From Prasinococcaceae sp. CCMP 1430 (Eukaryota > Plantae > Prasinodermophyta): 64,000 nucleotides of DNA. The notes beneath the pieces are model-generated. The model searched no databases, was not told the origin of the DNA, and saw only the letters and a list, made by a program, of their open reading frames with translations. Shown piece by piece: positions 6,060 to 63,039 of this stretch. The DNA is taken from the NCBI GenBank assembly GCA_013416795.1, contig RQSC01001202.1, forward strand, positions 62,001 through 126,000. Direction: 5' to 3'. Every line of letters starts with the position of its first letter. The first letter of the stretch is position 1. A program made the translations under genes and the position numbers.

Positions 6060-6474
6060 NNNNNNNNNNNNNNNNNNNNNNNNNNNNNNNNNNNNNNNNN
6101 NNNNNNNNNNNNNNNNNNNNNNNNNNNNNNNNNNNNNNNNNNNNNNNNNNNNNNNNNNNNNNNNNNNNNNNNNNNNNNNNNNNNNNNNNNNNNNNNNNNN
6201 NNNNNNNNNNNNNNNNNNNNNNNNNNNNNNNNNNNNNNNNNNNNNNNNNNNNNNNNNNNNNNNNNNNNNNNNNNNNNNNNNNNNNNNNNNNNNNNNNNNN
6301 NNNNNNNNNNNNNNNNNNNNNNNNNNNNNNNNNNNNNNNNNNNNNNNNNNNNNNNNNNNNNNNNNNNNNNNNNNNNNNNNNNNNNNNNNNNNNNNNNNNN
6401 NNNNNNNNNNNNNNNNNNNNNNNNNNNNNNNNNNNNNNNNNNNNNNNNNNNNNNNNNNNNNNNNNNNNNNNNNN
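6060..6474. other. Assembly gap (N run)
   Basis: Run of Ns. Other gaps are at 15463-15500, 45388-45663 and 61032-61322, with single Ns at 16741 and 39339. Confidence 1.
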
Positions 6475-7676
6475 TGGCGCGCCGCCGGCGCTCCGTTCTC
6501 GCGGCGCGCGCGCGCGCGCGCGCGCGCGCCGCGGGTTCGCGCTGCGAATGCAATAGAACGTGCTCATATTTGTACATCACAATGCATCGCGAGTCCCGAA
6601 GTTGGTGCGCGCTGACCACGCGATCCGCCTCAGGGGCAAACACGCGCCAGAGAGATTCTGAATGGGATGACACCACCTTTGGACGAGCGAGCATTTCGTG
6701 TGCTCGGACCGCGATTTCCGCCGCGCGGTGCGGGAAACGGCGGGGCGGATCGGAGGCCGGGGCGGCGGCGCTGCCGCGGCCGCAATTTCAAAAAAAAAAA
6801 AAAGTGAAGTCCGGCTGGCCTGTCTGGGTTCGGCGAAGGCCAAGGAGCGCGCTCGATGGATCGATCGGCGGATCGCCCGCGAGCCTCCCGCGGATCCGTT
6901 TCCTGGTGCGAGGGCGCCGGGATGCGAGGGGCGGCGCCCGCCCGTCCGGAGCGTCGCGCGCGCGTCGAAGCACCGCACGCTCCATCGAATAAAATGGCTC
7001 TGCTATACCCACGGGAGACTCCTATTTTGTTTAAAAAACGCGTCCGTTTTTTTTTTTGCAGGCGCGTGTTGATTGATTGATCATCACACGGTTCGTTGCA
7101 TTCATTATTATTTATTTACTGTGTGGTGGCCAGCCTGCAGCAGGCGGGGCCGGACCGACCGACCGACCGACCGAACCGACGCCCGAACCCGACAAACACC
7201 CACCCGCCAAAAAAAAATCGAAATAAAAATCAACGAGACGCCCGCGATTCGATGGAGATTTTTGTGGTCGCAGGCGCTGCGCCCCGCCACCGCCCCGTCG
7301 GCCCTCCCCGCCACGCCGCCACCCCGTCGGCCCAGCCGCGAACGAAATTCGCCCCGGCGCTTTGACGCCGAGGCCGGAGAGCACGCGTGCGCGCGTCAAA
7401 CGACGGAAGGCGCGCGTGTGGGGCGCGCTCTTCCGCTGCTTTCGAGCGCGCGGCGCGCGCGCGCGCGCGCGCGCGCCACACCGCGCGCACCTCTCTGCCC
7501 CACACCCACACCCACACCCACACACCCACACACACACACCCACACACGCTCCGCCGTGCTCGTCGTCGGACAAGAAGGGTTTTCCCGGCGGTGGCGGCGC
7601 GCGCGCGCGTGCCGGGTGCGCGCGCGCACTGCGCTCGCTCGCTCGCTCGCGCCCCGGCTGTCGCGGCGCGCTCGCG

Positions 7677-9580
7677 ATGGCGGCGGCGGCGGTCGCCCCC
7701 CGGCGGCACCGACACCAGCACCACCAGCGGAACCGACACCATCACCACCAGCGGCACCGACACCAGCACCACCGCCATCGCCGCCAACACCCTCCGCGCG
7801 CCGCAGCAACACCCAACAAGGACAGTATGGGCAAGGACGGCGACGGCGTGCTGGGGTGCTACGCGTACGGCAACGGCGACGACATCGGCCTGCGCGCGGC
7901 CATCGTCGACCCGGCGACGGGCGAGTTCCTGCGCGCGGGCGCGTCGTCGCCGCTCGAAAGCACCGAGCCCGAGGACATCGCCAGGGCGGTCAAGAAGATC
8001 GCCGACACCTTCGAGTGGAACGGCCTGATAGGCCTCGGCCTGCCCGGCGTCGTCACCCGCGAGGACGTCAAGGCGGACGACTCGTCCCCGCGGCTCGGGC
8101 GGCTCGCGCTCGAGGAGCAGCTCCACGCGCTGACGGGCCGCGACATCATGGTGATGACGGGCGCCGAGGCCAACGGGTACGCCGACGTGGCCTTCGGCGC
8201 TGTTTCGAACGACACGCCGGAGCTCGTGCTCGTCGTCACGCTCGGCCGCGGCATCGGCGCGGCGCTCTTCGAGCACGGCATGCTCGTGCGCAACCTCTAC
8301 AAGCACCACATCACACGCGAGTGGCAGGACGAGCGCTGGAGCTCGGCCGCGCTGCCCGACGCCGACACGCCCGAGGGCGACGCCGCGTGGGGGGCCTACG
8401 GCGAGCGCGTGGACGCCTTCGTCGCCGAGCTGGCGGCCTTCATGAAACCCGACGCCATCGTCATCAGCGGGTCGGCGGCGGCGTCGTTCGACAAGTGGAA
8501 GTCGGGGCTCACCACGAGCGTGCCCGTCGCCGCGAGCGAGATGGGCATCGTCGCGGGCGTCAAGGGCTCCGCGTACGGCGCCAACATGCAGCGCACCACC
8601 TTGCAGGAGCTCGTGGAGCTCCGCGCGGCCCTGGGCAGGCGCGTCACCGAGGAGACCAGCGGTGGCCGGGACTTCGACGAGGTGCTGCACGAGATGTTCG
8701 ACGAGGTGAGCAAAGCTGAGCGCGGAGGGGCGCCAGCGCGCGCGCCAGCGCGCGCGCCGCGCGCCGGTGCGCGCCGCCGGTCACCACGTCGAAGGGGCGC
8801 GCGTGGGGTCGCCGCGCCGCGAACAGTCCGCTGACTCGCTCATGCCGCATCACCCGCACCACCCGCATACAAACATCATCCGCACCATCACCGCATCACC
8901 CCATCATCAATCACCACACACACACAACCTCTCAAAAAAAAAAAAAAAAGATCGACGCGGACGGGAACGGCTACCTCGACGTCGCCGAGATCCAGGCGGC
9001 GGCCTCGCGCGTCGGCATCAAGCTGACCGAGACCGAAGCGGAGGCGCTCGTCCTCGAGCTGGACACAGACACGCTGCACCGCGTGGGAATCTCGTACGAG
9101 GAGTTCGTCGAGTGGTACCGCACCACCAAACTGTACGAGGCGGGCGAGGTGCAGCAGCTCATGTCCGCCGACGACTTCGAGTCGGCCCTGGCGCAGGAGA
9201 TGCAGAGCGGCAGGCTCGTGTGCCTGGAGGTCGGCTTCACGTTCTGCCGGCCGTGCAAGGCGTTCAAGCCGAAGTACGAGCGCATCGCCAAGACGATGGC
9301 CAACACGCGCATGCTCTTCGTCAACGGGAACGAGAACTCCTCCACCGTCGAGCTGTGCCGCGACACGCTCAAGGTGCGCTCCAGCCCCTCGTTCTTCTTC
9401 TTCCGGGACGGCAAGGAGGTGCACAGGCACACGGGCGCCAACGAGGAGCGCCTGAAGGACTTCTTGGACGCGTTCGAGGCCGACCCCACGCTCGTAGATC
9501 CCCCGCCGGAGGAGGAGGGGGAGGAGGCCGAGAGGACGGCGGAGGCAGGGGCAGAGCGGGCGGCGGAGGCGAAGTCCTAA
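7677..9580 (+). CDS. ROK/polyphosphate-glucokinase-like domain + EF-hand pair + thioredoxin (CRPC) fusion; intron 8706-8950; 5' structure uncertain
   Basis: PPGK-like segments (AAIVDPATGEFL, FEWNGLIGLGLPGVV, LVVTLGRGIGAALF, PDAIVISG). GAG|GTGAGC donor and AAAG| acceptor in phase 0, then IDADGNGYLDVAEI (EF-hand) and FTFCRPCK (thioredoxin). TGTAA at 9618. Confidence 0.8.
7705..7776 (+). repeat. 24-bp tandem repeat, three copies
   Basis: ggcaccgacaccagcaccaccagc units start at 7705, 7729 and 7753. They read GTDTSTTS in one frame and His-rich in the PPGK frame. Confidence 0.85.
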
Positions 9581-10176
9581 GGCCGTGTGCTGTCCGTGCT
9601 GCGAGGTTGGACGCTCTTGTAACGTGACCCACCCCCCATTTTTTTTTTGATGCGCGGAGCGACGCAGCGCGCAGCAGCGCGCGCGGATGACGTTATTGTC
9701 GCTCGCTCGCTCGTTCGAGGCGCGCGCGCCGCGCGGCCCGCACATCAAAACGCACGCGGATGCGACGAGGGGAGCGCCACGCCGCGAATCAGGATCGTTG
9801 CCCCAGTCAGCGGACCGGTGCGACCCGCGGGGTGCGTCGCGACGAGGGCGCGAGGAGGGGGGGAACGGATCCGGGGCGGGCAGGAGGCGCCCGACTCGAA
9901 CGCCGGATCCGGAGTGCAGCTGTACAGTATCACCATCAGATTCCGTGATAGCAGCGCACAGGGTGCAACCTGAACGAACAAAAATAATATTTGAGGTTTT
10001 TAGAAAAGGTTTTATTCACAATGTACCGTCCCTACGGTGACGCGTCCACACCGACACGCAGTGGCGATGGACAATGGTGGTGGCGGCGAAGCGGCGATCC
10101 CCAAACCCGACCGCGCCCCCGCTCCTTCCCCCCCCCATCCCCCCCCTTCCCCGCCCTGGCTGCGACGGCGGGGGCA

Positions 10177-12100
10177 TCACTCGCACGTCATCATGCGGAT
10201 GACCGCGCACTGCTTCTCGACGTTGTAGAGGGTGACAACCTTGTCGCCCTTCTCGAGCACCCCCTGCTGCACGCCGTAGGCGATCGACTCCTCGATGGCC
10301 TGCTTGGCCGCCGCCGCGGGCGCCACGTCGGTGTCCTTGGGCGACACCATCACGGGGATCAGCCCGCGCGAGATGAGGCACTGCCGCGCGAGCATGCGGC
10401 CTGGGGTCTTCGAGCGGAAGCCGATGGCCGCGCGGGCCTCGCGGGGCACGACGCCCACGATCACGGGCTGCGAGGGCCTGTACTTCGAGATGAGGCGCGC
10501 GGCCACGCCGCTGGCGGCGAGGCACACGATCGCCTTGGCGTTCGTCTTCAGGGCGGTCTGCACGGCCGAGCTCGCCAGGCTCTCGATGTCGGACATGGTG
10601 CCGTCCTCCATGCTGCGGTCGATGAAGTCGTTCGCCAGCTTGGTGTTGTCGATGCAGCGCTCGGCCTCGCGCGTGATGGAGGCCATGATGGTGACGGCCT
10701 CGACGGGGAAGGCGCCGGCGGCGGTCTCGCCCGACAGCATGACCGAGTCGGTGCCGTCGAGCACGGCGTTGGCCACATCGGTCGCCTCGGCTCGCGTGGG
10801 CCGCGGGTTGTTGACCATGGACTCCAGCATCTGCGTGGCCGTCACCACGGGCTTGCCCGCGATGTTGCAGCGCCTGATGATGTCCTTCTGCACCTCGAAC
10901 ATCTTCTCCAGCGGGATCTCCATGCCCAGGTCGCCGCGCGCCACCATGATGCCGTCCGACTCCCGGATGATTTCGTCGATGTTGTCCAGCGCCTCCTGGT
11001 TCTCGATCTTGGAGATGATGCGCACGCCCGAGTCGGCGCCCAGCGTCTCGCGCACCTCCTGCACGTCGCTCGCCTTGCGCACGAACGACGCGGCCAGGAA
11101 GTCGATGCCCTCGACGAGGCCCCACTCGGTGAGATCCGCCTTGTCCTTCTCAGTGAGCACCGGCAGGTTCACGATGGCGCCCGGAAGGTTGCAGTTCTTG
11201 CGCTCGCCGATGGTCGCCGTGTTGAGAGCGCGCGCCTGCACGGTGCCCGCGTCGGGGTTGCACGACAGCACCTCGAACATGAGCGAGCCGTCGGCGCACA
11301 GGATCTTCGATCCCGGGCTGACGGTGGACGCGATGTCCTTGTAGCTCACTGCCACGAGGTTGGGGTTGCCCTTGGCCTCGTAGTCCGCCGTGATGGTCAC
11401 CTCGGAACCCATCTCGTACGTGCATTTGTCGCCGCTCTCCAGGAAGCCCGTGCGGACCTCCGGCCCCTTGGTGTCCTGCAGCACCGCGCACATGATGCCG
11501 GTGTTCTCGCTCGCCTTCCGCAGGTTGGCGAGCGTCTCACTGTGGTACTCGTACGAGCCGTGCGAGAAGTTGAAGCGCGCGACAGACATCCCCGCGCGCA
11601 GCAGGTCCTCACACTGCTCGACCGTGCGCGAGCTCGGCCCGAGCGTGCACACGATGTGGGTGCCCTGTGTGTGCTGCTTGGACGCAGTCGCGAGAACATT
11701 GGGGGCGGGCAGGTCGGACGTGAGGTGGGCCTCGTACTCGGCTGCGGGGTGCGGCGCGCGCGCGGGGGGAGGGGGGAGGGACGGCGAGCGCGGGCAGGCG
11801 TTCCGGACGATCCGGCCGGCGCGGCGCGTCAGCCCATCAGCGCGCATCGACTGCCTCGCAAGCCCCACCAGCGCGCCGCGCGCGGGCATCGGAAGCGGCC
11901 TACCAGCGCCCGCGCCCGCGCCAGCAGCGCGCCTGCACACGCGAGCGCCTCGCGCTCGCGCGCGCCGCGCAACGCACTGTCGCTCTCCACGGAGTCACCT
12001 GGTCCCAGGACGACGGCGTCGCTGCTCACCGCCTTGGCCCGCGGCGCCGCGAGGAGGCGACGCCCCGCCGCGGAGAGGGACCACACGCGCTCTCCCGCGC
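10177..12100 (-). CDS. PK: Pyruvate kinase with a plant cytosolic-type core; main exon 10177-11741, intron 11742-11998, start uncertain
   Basis: IVCTLGPSSR, ARFNFSHG, DTKGPEVRTG, KIENQE, MVARGDLGMEIP, TATQMLESM and VMLSGETA motifs. The phase-1 intron joins an upstream Ala/Arg/Ser-rich exon. Confidence 0.95.
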
Positions 12101-61322: not shown

Positions 61323-63039
61323 CCGCGCGGCGAGCGCGCGTGCGAGCACGCGCACTTCGCCTCGGCGGCGGCCGTCGCAGGGGCCGGGGCGGACGGGGAA
61401 CGCGGCGGATGGGAGGCCCAGCTGTCCGAGGAGATTGCAGCCGCAGCGAGCGACGCGGAGGACGCCGTCGCCGATCGAGCGGAGGCGCTCGACCCCTGGG
61501 TGGCCACCGCGCTGCGCGTCGCCGCGTCGGCGTGGGACGAGTGCCGCGCGGAGCGCTCGCTCGGGCAGCAGAGGGTGCGTCGGCGCGGCGAGCGGGCGCG
61601 GGAGCGGCTGCGCGTGCGCGGGGTGGCCAGGCCCAGCGGGTGCAATGCGACGCGCACGCGCGCCCGCGCCTCAGTGCTCGCGCTGACATCCCCGGGACGG
61701 CCGCAAAACACAACACACCGCCAGTTCGGCGGCATCGCCTCGGCGGCGCCCGCGCGCGACGAGGCGGAGCGGGCCATTCGCACGGCGGTGGAGAGGATGG
61801 CGGAGTGCGGCGGCACGCTTCCCGAGGGCGGCGTGTGGGCGCGCCTCTTCGTCGCCGCGCGTGGCGTTGTGGCCGGCGCGGCGCTCGCGAGCGGCGCGGA
61901 CGACAGCGCGCTGCGCGCTGCAGCTCGTCGACGCGGCCCTCTCGCTGGGCGGCGCACGAGCGCGCGCGCACCCGGGTCAGGCGCGCACGCACGCGCTGGC
62001 GTGGGTGGGGGCGCTCGCGCGCGAGGCAGCCGAGGCGCAGCCGTTAGACTCTGGAGCCGCCGCGCTGCCACCCGTCAGCCCCGCGAACGCGCGCATCCCG
62101 GCCTCGCCTCCGTCCTCCGACGTCCCGCACATCCCGCCCGAGCGAGCAGTGCCACGCAAGAGCTGCGTGGGGCTGAGCGCCGCGCGCTTCGCGGACGCCC
62201 ACGTGCGTGCGCGCGAGCCCGTCGTGCTCACCGACATGCTCTCCCCGTGGCTGGACGACGACCTCGCACGCGAGATGTCCGACCTTCGCTGGTGGTCTGA
62301 CCCCGCCACGTGCGGCAATTGCCTGGTGCCGGTGGAGATGGGCGTCTCCCTGCGCTACGGTGCCGCCGGTGGCGGCGCCAACGGCGCCGAGAGGATAATG
62401 CGCGTGGCGGAGCTTGCGCGATTCATGGCGCAGAGCAACGCCAGCAGCGCCAGCGACGCAGACGATGCGCCCGGGGGCGGCGCCGATGGCAACGGGGGCG
62501 CGCGCCCGCAGGACCAGAGGGATCAAGGGTCCAGCGGCGGCGAAGACGACGTGGAGGGAGGCCATGCGCGCGCCAAGGACGACCCTCCTGCAGGTCTGCA
62601 GGTTGCGTACATGAGCCAGCACCGCCTGCTGCACCACGCACCCGCGCTGCGCGAGCGCTTCGAAGTGCCCCCGTATGCCCTTGGCCGAGTGGGCAGCATG
62701 AACGTGTGGCTGGGCACGCGTGGAACGGTGACACCGCTGCACACAGATGAGGCGCAGAACTTGCTGTCGCAGCTCGCTGGGGCCAAGTACGTGCGCCTCT
62801 ACTCGCCGCGCGCGCGCGCGGCTATGTACCCCTTCCGCTCGGCAGGCAACGAGGCAGCAAACGAGTACTCGGAGGTGCGTTGCGAGTCACCCGACGCGAA
62901 TCGTCACCCCCTCTTCCTGGCTGAGGAAGGCTTCAAAGAGGTCGTGCTGCTGCCGGGCGAGACGCTCTTCATACCGAAGGGGTGGTGGCACTATGTCCGC
63001 GCCCTCACCACCGCGGCCAGCATGAATACCTGGTGGTGA
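61323..63039 (+). CDS. JMJD5: JmjC protein of the JMJD5/KDM8 (JMJ30) class; 5' end in the gap, apparent frameshift near 61915
   Basis: EPVVLTDM, VPVEMG, AYMSQHRLL, NVWLGTRGTVTPLHTD (HxD), QLAGAKYVRLY (K) and LFIPKGWWHYVRAL (His). Confidence 0.88.

Follow-up and report, generated by a model that had tools for sequence, protein, structure and literature searches.

Published work presents calredoxin (CRX), a protein of Chlamydomonas reinhardtii, as a unique green-algal thioredoxin that depends on Ca2+ (PMC4911631, PMC13351737). In this protein, Lys242, which follows the CRPC motif, and the Asn267-Ala268-Asn269 loop connect Ca2+ at EF-hand 4 with the cysteines of the active site (PMC4911631). For bacterial polyphosphate glucokinase (PPGK), the roles of the conserved motifs, including that of the catalytic Asp, were taken from PMC4252912, according to which Lys25 and the phosphate-1 as well as the phosphate-2 region bind phosphate or polyphosphate. 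Here, a gene that joins relatives of these two proteins was analyzed in a 64,000-nucleotide stretch of contig RQSC01001202.1, deposited as Prasinococcaceae sp. CCMP 1430 (positions 62,001 to 126,000, forward strand). The whole stretch is called the window, and all coordinates refer to it. Positions 7827-9580 on the + strand are a genuine transcribed two-exon nuclear gene of Prasinoderma coloniale. With a probability of about 0.7, we consider that this fusion gene encodes a PPGK-derived pseudokinase followed by a calredoxin-like, Ca2+-modulated thioredoxin half, and that the former kinase would act as a scaffold or ligand-binding domain.

The G+C content of the window was about 70%, and that reported for P. 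coloniale is 69.8% (PMC7455551). On the + strand, an open frame extended from an ATG at 7677 to the GAG codon ending at 8705, which was followed by gtgagc (exon-intron boundary 8705/8706); it resumed at 8951, after an intron 3' end reading aaaag at 8950, and continued to the TAA stop at 9578-9580. The GT..AG intron (8706-8950, + strand) was 245 nt long, in phase 0, with an A-run at its 3' end; reading through it led to an in-frame stop, and its equivalent of the G+C content at third codon positions (GC3) was 0.54. The JGI transcript contig L002 (1,724 nt) aligned at 100% identity to two blocks, 7688-8705 and 8951-9648, with nothing between them. Since exactly the predicted intron had been removed, L002 is a spliced transcript; it lacks precisely 8706-8950, in agreement with the phase-0 8705/8951 junction of the preliminary description, and a single transcript spans the ROK part and the EF-hand-thioredoxin part, for which separate transcripts would have spoken against one gene product. 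The transcript evidence consisted of two assembled contigs. The second, L001, carried an orthologue (P0003, 68% identical) and was collinear across the same junction.

The coding part of exon 1 (7827-8705, + strand) gave residues 1-293 of 502, which comprised the kinase-like domain, a connecting helix and the first helix of EF-hand 1, as read from the translation, the identical annotated protein and L002. Exon 2 (8951-9580, + strand) began with IDADGNGYLDVAE and encoded residues 294-502 and the stop, with the EF-hand pair, the thioredoxin domain and an acidic tail. EF-hand 1 straddled the junction: the end of exon 1 supplied its entering helix FDEVLHEMFDE, and the Ca2+ loop came from the opening codons of exon 2. 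The annotated P. coloniale counterpart in EukProt, whose match assigns the genome to this species, PRCOL_00006532-RA (P0001, the protein encoded by L002), has 502 aa, was 100% identical and carries ROK, EF-hand and Thioredoxin domains, so that the fusion was already present in the annotation. The two exons were searched separately, and P0001 was the full-length sequence used afterwards. In two more distant orthologues on genomic contigs of 30-35 kb (P0010, P0007) the open reading frame was unbroken and the domain order unchanged.

Translation most likely starts at ATG 7827, to judge from codon usage, the extent of L002 and the annotated model. GC3 was 0.78 in 7677-7826, compared with 0.96-0.98 in the coding sequence from 7827 onward, and 8 of the 50 codons in 7677-7826 never occurred in the remaining 502 codons. 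L002 began at 7688, just downstream of ATG 7677, and the first residue of P0001 corresponded to M51 of the translation from 7677, which is ATG 7827. Codon usage and the extent of the transcript contig spoke against ATG 7677, the start given in the preliminary description, as the likely start; the His-rich N-terminus that it would give, 50 codons that would be rich in His, Arg and Gln, is probably 5' untranslated region (UTR), with a minimum extent of 7688-7826 (+ strand). A start at ATG 7827 leaves only about 9 residues ahead of the first strand of the kinase-like domain. The basic 50-residue extension exists only with ATG 7677; since no presequence is present from ATG 7827, the Prasinoderma protein is probably cytosolic. 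A CAC/CAG/CGA repeat, which would give poly-His/Arg/Gln if translated, was seen within the 5' UTR. The first 8 bases of L002 did not match the genome and resembled a short inverted copy of downstream sequence. At the other end, L002 extended to 9648, giving a 3' UTR of at least 9581-9648 (+ strand).

The architecture was not peculiar to the Prasinoderma genome. When a profile of P0001 and P0003 was compared with 1.84 billion representatives, 3,294 matches were obtained, 48 of them at E <= 1e-30, and at least 25 cluster representatives were aligned over the full length, from the kinase-like domain through the thioredoxin. The green members included two paralogues of Mesostigma viride (Mv09621, Mv09767), Cymbomonas tetramitiformis KAK3245275 and Tetraselmis chui CAMPEP_0177761604; the dinoflagellate members included Symbiodinium natans CAE7415884 (annotated 'trx1') and Polarella glacialis CAE8581346, in which the ROK domain was no longer detected by Pfam. 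The other fusions came from marine transcripts or picoeukaryote-like contigs, and a look-up in the ESM Atlas gave clusters containing 50-166 generically named chlorophyte proteins, each 525-574 aa long. The search for ROK, EF-hand and thioredoxin fusions that the preliminary description had suggested thus revealed a conserved family with members in green algae and dinoflagellates. Four green members (P0007, P0008, P0009, P0022) additionally carried, at the N-terminus, a DCC1-like thiol-disulfide oxidoreductase domain (PF04134), and in these proteins two redox domains flank the pseudokinase and the EF-hands. In another orthologue (P0025, 589 aa), the thioredoxin region has no CxxC and becomes low-complexity, as in a degenerate paralogue or a frameshifted model. 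Two calls on ENA contigs were also noted. One, on a genomic contig (P0002), is a variant that differs at four amino acids (99% identity), a prokaryote-style call running into the intron, and points to the presence of a second strain of Prasinoderma among public metagenomes. In the other (P0004), 68 residues of the kinase-like domain are joined to an unrelated hydrophobic tail, probably through a faulty gene call or assembly.

The N-terminal part of the protein (7848-8600, + strand, residues about 8-258) was recognized as a PPGK-derived domain of the ROK/ASKHA fold. The Pfam ROK model (PF00480) matched residues 99-201 of the exon 1 translation with 33.1 bits (gathering threshold 22.9). The NCBIfam polyphosphate--glucose phosphotransferase equivalog NF045942 matched over profile positions 11-240 of 242 (E 5e-31), with a score of 108.3 bits, below the curated cutoff of 250, while ten stand-alone matches from the family search reached 250-362 bits. 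The sole strong sequence relative of exon 1 in the PDB was 1WOQ, the polyphosphate/ATP glucomannokinase (PPGMK) of Arthrobacter (E 5e-13). An AlphaFold2 model built from a 71-sequence alignment had a predicted local distance difference test score (pLDDT) of 88.9 and a predicted TM-score (pTM) of 0.78, and the ROK-like domain was mostly above pLDDT 90. With this model, the top Foldseek match was again 1WOQ (TMt 0.74), followed by ROK kinases and ROK repressors, including the structures of Mlc (1Z6R, 3BP8) and Lmo0178 (5F7P); the C-terminal half matched calredoxin (5e37_C).

The catalytic motifs were compared in an alignment of 35 sequences, consisting of the 25 fusions and the ten stand-alone matches, all of which passed the NCBIfam PPGK cutoff. 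LGIDIGGSGIK, NDADAAG, TxGTGIG, ExGH and GGG were present in 10/10 stand-alone PPGKs. In the Prasinoderma protein, LGIDIGGSGIK was replaced by LGCYAYGNGDDIGLR; the former phosphate-1 motif (7851-7901, + strand) reads LGCYAYGNGDDIGLRAA instead of LGIDIGGSGIKGA, with Asp changed to Tyr and Lys to Arg, so that G-C-Y-A-Y-G-N-G-D-D-I-G-L-R stands where PPGK has G-I-D-I-G-G-S/T-G-I-K. The former connect-1/catalytic motif (8157-8177, + strand) reads TGAEANG instead of NDADAAG, the catalytic Asp D105 being Gly, and GAEA-G was conserved in the green-algal clade. The phosphate-2 loop (8238-8258, + strand) was mostly retained as TLGRGIG, compared with TxGTGIG, with Thr changed to Arg. At the glucose motif, NTEFGHL of PPGK aligned with NLYKHHI (E to Y, G to H, H kept): Y-K-H-H stands in place of E-x-G-H and the downstream Glu, E162, is Ser, at positions that vary across the fusion family. 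The replacements of GIDVGGS by GCYAYGNG and of NDADAA by TGAEAN given in the preliminary description were upheld in this alignment, and its pairing of EFGH with LYKH proved to be one residue out of register.

The same losses extended across the family. Among the positions invariant in the ten PPGKs, N104, T133, R170 and D105, which is the connect-1 catalytic Asp, were kept in 0/25 fusions; D7 of phosphate-1, K14, D107, G152, H153 and N230 were kept in at most 2/25; E150 and E162 were lost in most. Structural Gly, Pro, Thr and Phe positions were retained in most fusions. The green-clade sequences read LGvY...G.G.RAA, mTGAEANG and TLGRGIG and had no ExGH; those of the dinoflagellate clade read LGIELR, HTxAAGY and PTGR. 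These results indicated that the kinase-like domain is a pseudokinase, because the fold and the structural Gly/Pro positions are kept and the Asp residues of Mg/phosphate-1 and of catalysis are gone, as are the residues that bind sugar. A catalytic Asp in a proper alignment would have spoken against the dead kinase of the preliminary description; none was found. The domain is not decaying. Between the two Prasinoderma-type sequences, the ratio of nonsynonymous to synonymous substitution rates (dN/dS) was 0.37 in the ROK-like part, 0.25 in the EF-hand part and 0.33 in the thioredoxin part, values that are, if anything, too high with GC3 near saturation. These ratios indicated purifying selection on the whole architecture. 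In the green clade, the former active site belonged to the stretches with the highest conservation, with the clade-specific replacements Y12, R23, GAEA-G and R141.

In the C-terminal half, Pfam EF-hand_7 (PF13499) matched exon 2 with 37.1 bits (threshold 30, E 4e-9). The Ca2+-binding loop of EF-hand 1 (8954-8989, + strand), DADGNGYLDVAE, was a canonical 12-residue loop, as it was in most family members. The loop of EF-hand 2 (9062-9103, + strand), DTDTLHRVGISYEE, was degenerate, with an insertion of about 3 residues and Leu at a ligand position in both Prasinoderma-type sequences, and was canonical in several orthologues. The one EF-hand plus a degenerate second hand of the preliminary description therefore stood. 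The thioredoxin domain (9143-9481, + strand) matched PF00085 with 50.9 bits (threshold 23.5, E 1.7e-13). Its active site F-C-R-P-C-K lies at 9242-9259 (+ strand), with FCRPC at 9242-9256, as had been read before, and CRPC at 9245-9256. Among PDB sequences, exon 2 had its second-best match in 5E37, the calredoxin of C. reinhardtii (E 3.9e-12), which was aligned over the whole thioredoxin domain. FCRPCK and GNEN of Prasinoderma aligned with WCRPCK and GNAN of 5E37, the G-N-E-N loop (9326-9337, + strand) corresponding to calredoxin G-N267-A-N269, and both CRPCK and GN-x-N were conserved across the green clade. The assignment of a calredoxin-like thioredoxin was supported in this way, and the description of one gene product with PPGK-like, EF-hand and thioredoxin parts agreed with L002 and with the Pfam, NCBIfam and PDB matches, which greatly exceeded chance expectation.

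The origin of the kinase-like domain was examined in a tree of the kinase-like domains, 37 stand-alone matches and 70 labelled PPGKs from bacteria, with ROK sequences as the outgroup; it was obtained by a quick search, contains long branches and should be read with caution. The 25 fusions formed one clade (SH-like approximate likelihood ratio test, SH-aLRT, 99) on a stem branch of 1.61 substitutions per site, and this clade divided into a green clade and a clade containing the dinoflagellates (SH-aLRT 100). Relative to the ROK outgroup, the fusion clade was placed inside the PPGK radiation; this radiation was a polytomy in which no donor was singled out, and the 80 genome loci fetched included no cyanobacterial sequence by which a plastid (cyanobacterial) origin could be judged. 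Judging from profile, structure and tree, the N-terminal domain descends from a bacterial polyphosphate glucokinase, and the architecture belongs to a family of single origin that is conserved among green algae as well as dinoflagellates. One fusion clade within the PPGK radiation fits a single acquisition or fusion, after which catalysis would have been lost. A separate PPGK-like protein of a streptophyte alga, Closterium sp. CAI5529943 (P0073, 353 aa, on a 4.1 Mb contig), had intact phosphate-1 and catalytic motifs and grouped with a betaproteobacterial PPGK (SH-aLRT 80), for which an independent bacterial transfer or contamination is possible.

Based on these features, a working model of the protein can be proposed. 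The C-terminal half would act like calredoxin, as a disulfide reductase that needs Ca2+ at the adjacent EF-hands for its activity or for binding its targets, because CRPCK and GNEN are present and EF-hand 1 is canonical; the Ca2+ dependence may be altered in Prasinoderma. A long helix joins the pseudokinase domain to the EF-hand pair and the thioredoxin. By analogy with the ROK domain of Mlc, the dead kinase domain could be a dimerisation or target-docking scaffold, or alternatively a non-catalytic binder of a phosphate-bearing ligand. Glucose as a ligand, and with it sugar sensing, appears unlikely since the sugar-binding residues are lost. Binding of phosphate or polyphosphate by this domain seems possible, being compatible with the retained phosphate-2 loop, the change of Lys to Arg, the additional Arg and a Trp motif that is kept in part.

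Several points weigh against this model. The calredoxin-like activity and the role of the pseudokinase domain are putative throughout the family, and the loss of canonical residues is not strict proof against every catalytic activity. With a single canonical EF-hand in Prasinoderma, Ca2+ control may be weak or different; the degenerate EF-hand 2 matches the position of calredoxin EF-hand 4, the reported gate of activity, and GN-x-N is missing from the dinoflagellate clade. The start at ATG 7827 was deduced from codon usage and a single transcript contig whose 5' end may be incomplete, and the suggested localisation is based solely on the missing presequence.

Among the other explanations, the three-input sensor of the preliminary description ranked highest, in which the dead kinase domain would bind polyphosphate or another phosphate ligand and allosterically gate the Ca2+-dependent thioredoxin. 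The phosphate-contacting elements were better kept than the sugar and catalytic ones, including the phosphate-2 loop TLGRGIG with its added Arg; the phosphate-1 Lys became a conserved Arg in 9/11 green members, a W..W..R stretch was partly conserved in the green clade, and the former active site was conserved rather than decayed. On the other side, the phosphate-1 glycines were changed to acidic residues in Prasinoderma (NGDD), where the second Trp is also Tyr, and the dinoflagellate clade retained few phosphate-contacting positions. We regard this explanation as tentative and less likely than not, and its extended form, in which a PPGK domain was repurposed as a sensor of polyphosphate or a phosphate ligand that gates the thioredoxin and the family is also the source or sister of calredoxin, as rather more doubtful.

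It is unlikely that the EF-hand pair is merely a structural linker in front of a Ca2+-independent thioredoxin. The degenerate EF-hand 2 of Prasinoderma and the poor loops of several dinoflagellate members would agree with such a linker, but loop 1 was canonical in Prasinoderma and in most members, EF-hand 2 was canonical in several green orthologues, and the residues of the calredoxin communication path, CRPC-K and GN-x-N, were conserved. An active kinase that works through non-canonical residues is very improbable: the fold was intact and confidently modelled, and the phosphate-2 loop was still present, together with some of the adenosine motif, but no fusion among the 25 had the catalytic Asp, the Asp that binds Mg and the sugar ligands (ExGH/Glu) were lost or nearly so, the NCBIfam PPGK score was 108 bits against a cutoff of 250, and the stem branch leading to the fusion clade was long (1.61). 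That the fusion is a gene-model or assembly artefact of two neighbouring genes is hardly credible, for which only the prokaryote-style call P0002 would speak, a ROK-only product stopping inside the intron, since the spliced transcript covers both parts, intronless orthologues keep the domain order, the architecture recurs in at least 25 cluster representatives and an EF-hand helix crosses the exon junction.

As for the surroundings of the gene, low-complexity (GC)n and (CA/CCCA)n tracts upstream and the CAC/CAG/CGA repeat inside the 5' UTR were seen in the intervals 7440-7640 and 7700-7790, and an assembly gap (N run) at 6060-6474 lies about 1.2 kb upstream. Downstream, a convergent single-ORF pyruvate kinase gene of 587 aa (10177-11940, - strand; Pfam PK 2e-135 and PK_C) was found, and the distance between the two stop codons was about 600 nt.

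In the literature on calredoxin, on the combination of ROK, EF-hand and thioredoxin, on algal PPGK and on the P. coloniale genome, no description of this fusion family was found; the family is conserved but undescribed, and the gene is annotated without a function or a name. It represents a second widespread architecture built on a calredoxin-type thioredoxin, here joined to a pseudoenzyme from bacterial polyphosphate glucokinase, and it spans the deepest green lineage (Prasinodermophyta), Mesostigma, prasinophytes, Tetraselmis and dinoflagellates, including coral symbionts. It offers a tractable case of pseudokinase neofunctionalisation in an ASKHA-fold enzyme, fresh candidates for Ca2+/redox cross-talk in marine phytoplankton, and a testable link to polyphosphate biology. 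If the phosphate-sensor explanation were true, one algal protein would couple polyphosphate or acidocalcisome status, Ca2+ signals and thiol redox. This is a specialist-level result and not a new principle.

Compared with the algal orthologues of Cymbomonas, Mesostigma, Tetraselmis, Symbiodinium and Polarella, the Prasinoderma protein has the same domain order and the same loss of kinase motifs and belongs to the same single clade. Several green members differ by the added DCC1-like domain, many orthologues have long N-terminal extensions, and in the dinoflagellate orthologues CR[TSA]C occurs and the kinase-like domain has diverged further. With bacterial PPGK (NF045942; Arthrobacter PPGMK, 1WOQ), the N-terminal domain shares the fold, the collinearity with the profile, the Gly/Pro framework and the phosphate-2 loop, whereas the catalytic Asp, the phosphate-1 Asp, the Lys, ExGH and the second Glu are all replaced, and the protein is eukaryotic and fused to EF-hands and a thioredoxin. 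A functional parallel may be the ROK repressors (Mlc, 1Z6R/3BP8; Lmo0178, 5F7P), in which a sugar-kinase fold without phosphoryl transfer serves as a module for binding ligands or partners, as is proposed for Prasinoderma. The repressors, however, start with a DNA-binding domain and are part of the ROK branch that binds zinc, whereas the partner domains in Prasinoderma are EF-hands and a thioredoxin and the domain comes from the PPGK branch. With calredoxin (5E37), the protein shares EF-hands directly upstream of the thioredoxin, the C-R-P-C-K active site, the G-N-x-N loop, which contacts the neighbouring EF-hand, and a Foldseek match over 217 columns. In calredoxin, a calmodulin-like domain contains four EF-hands that bind Ca2+, Trp precedes the first Cys and a chloroplast transit peptide is present, whereas the Prasinoderma protein has one EF-hand pair with one canonical hand, Phe in place of that Trp, no presequence if translation starts at ATG 7827, and a pseudo-PPGK domain of 250 residues in front.

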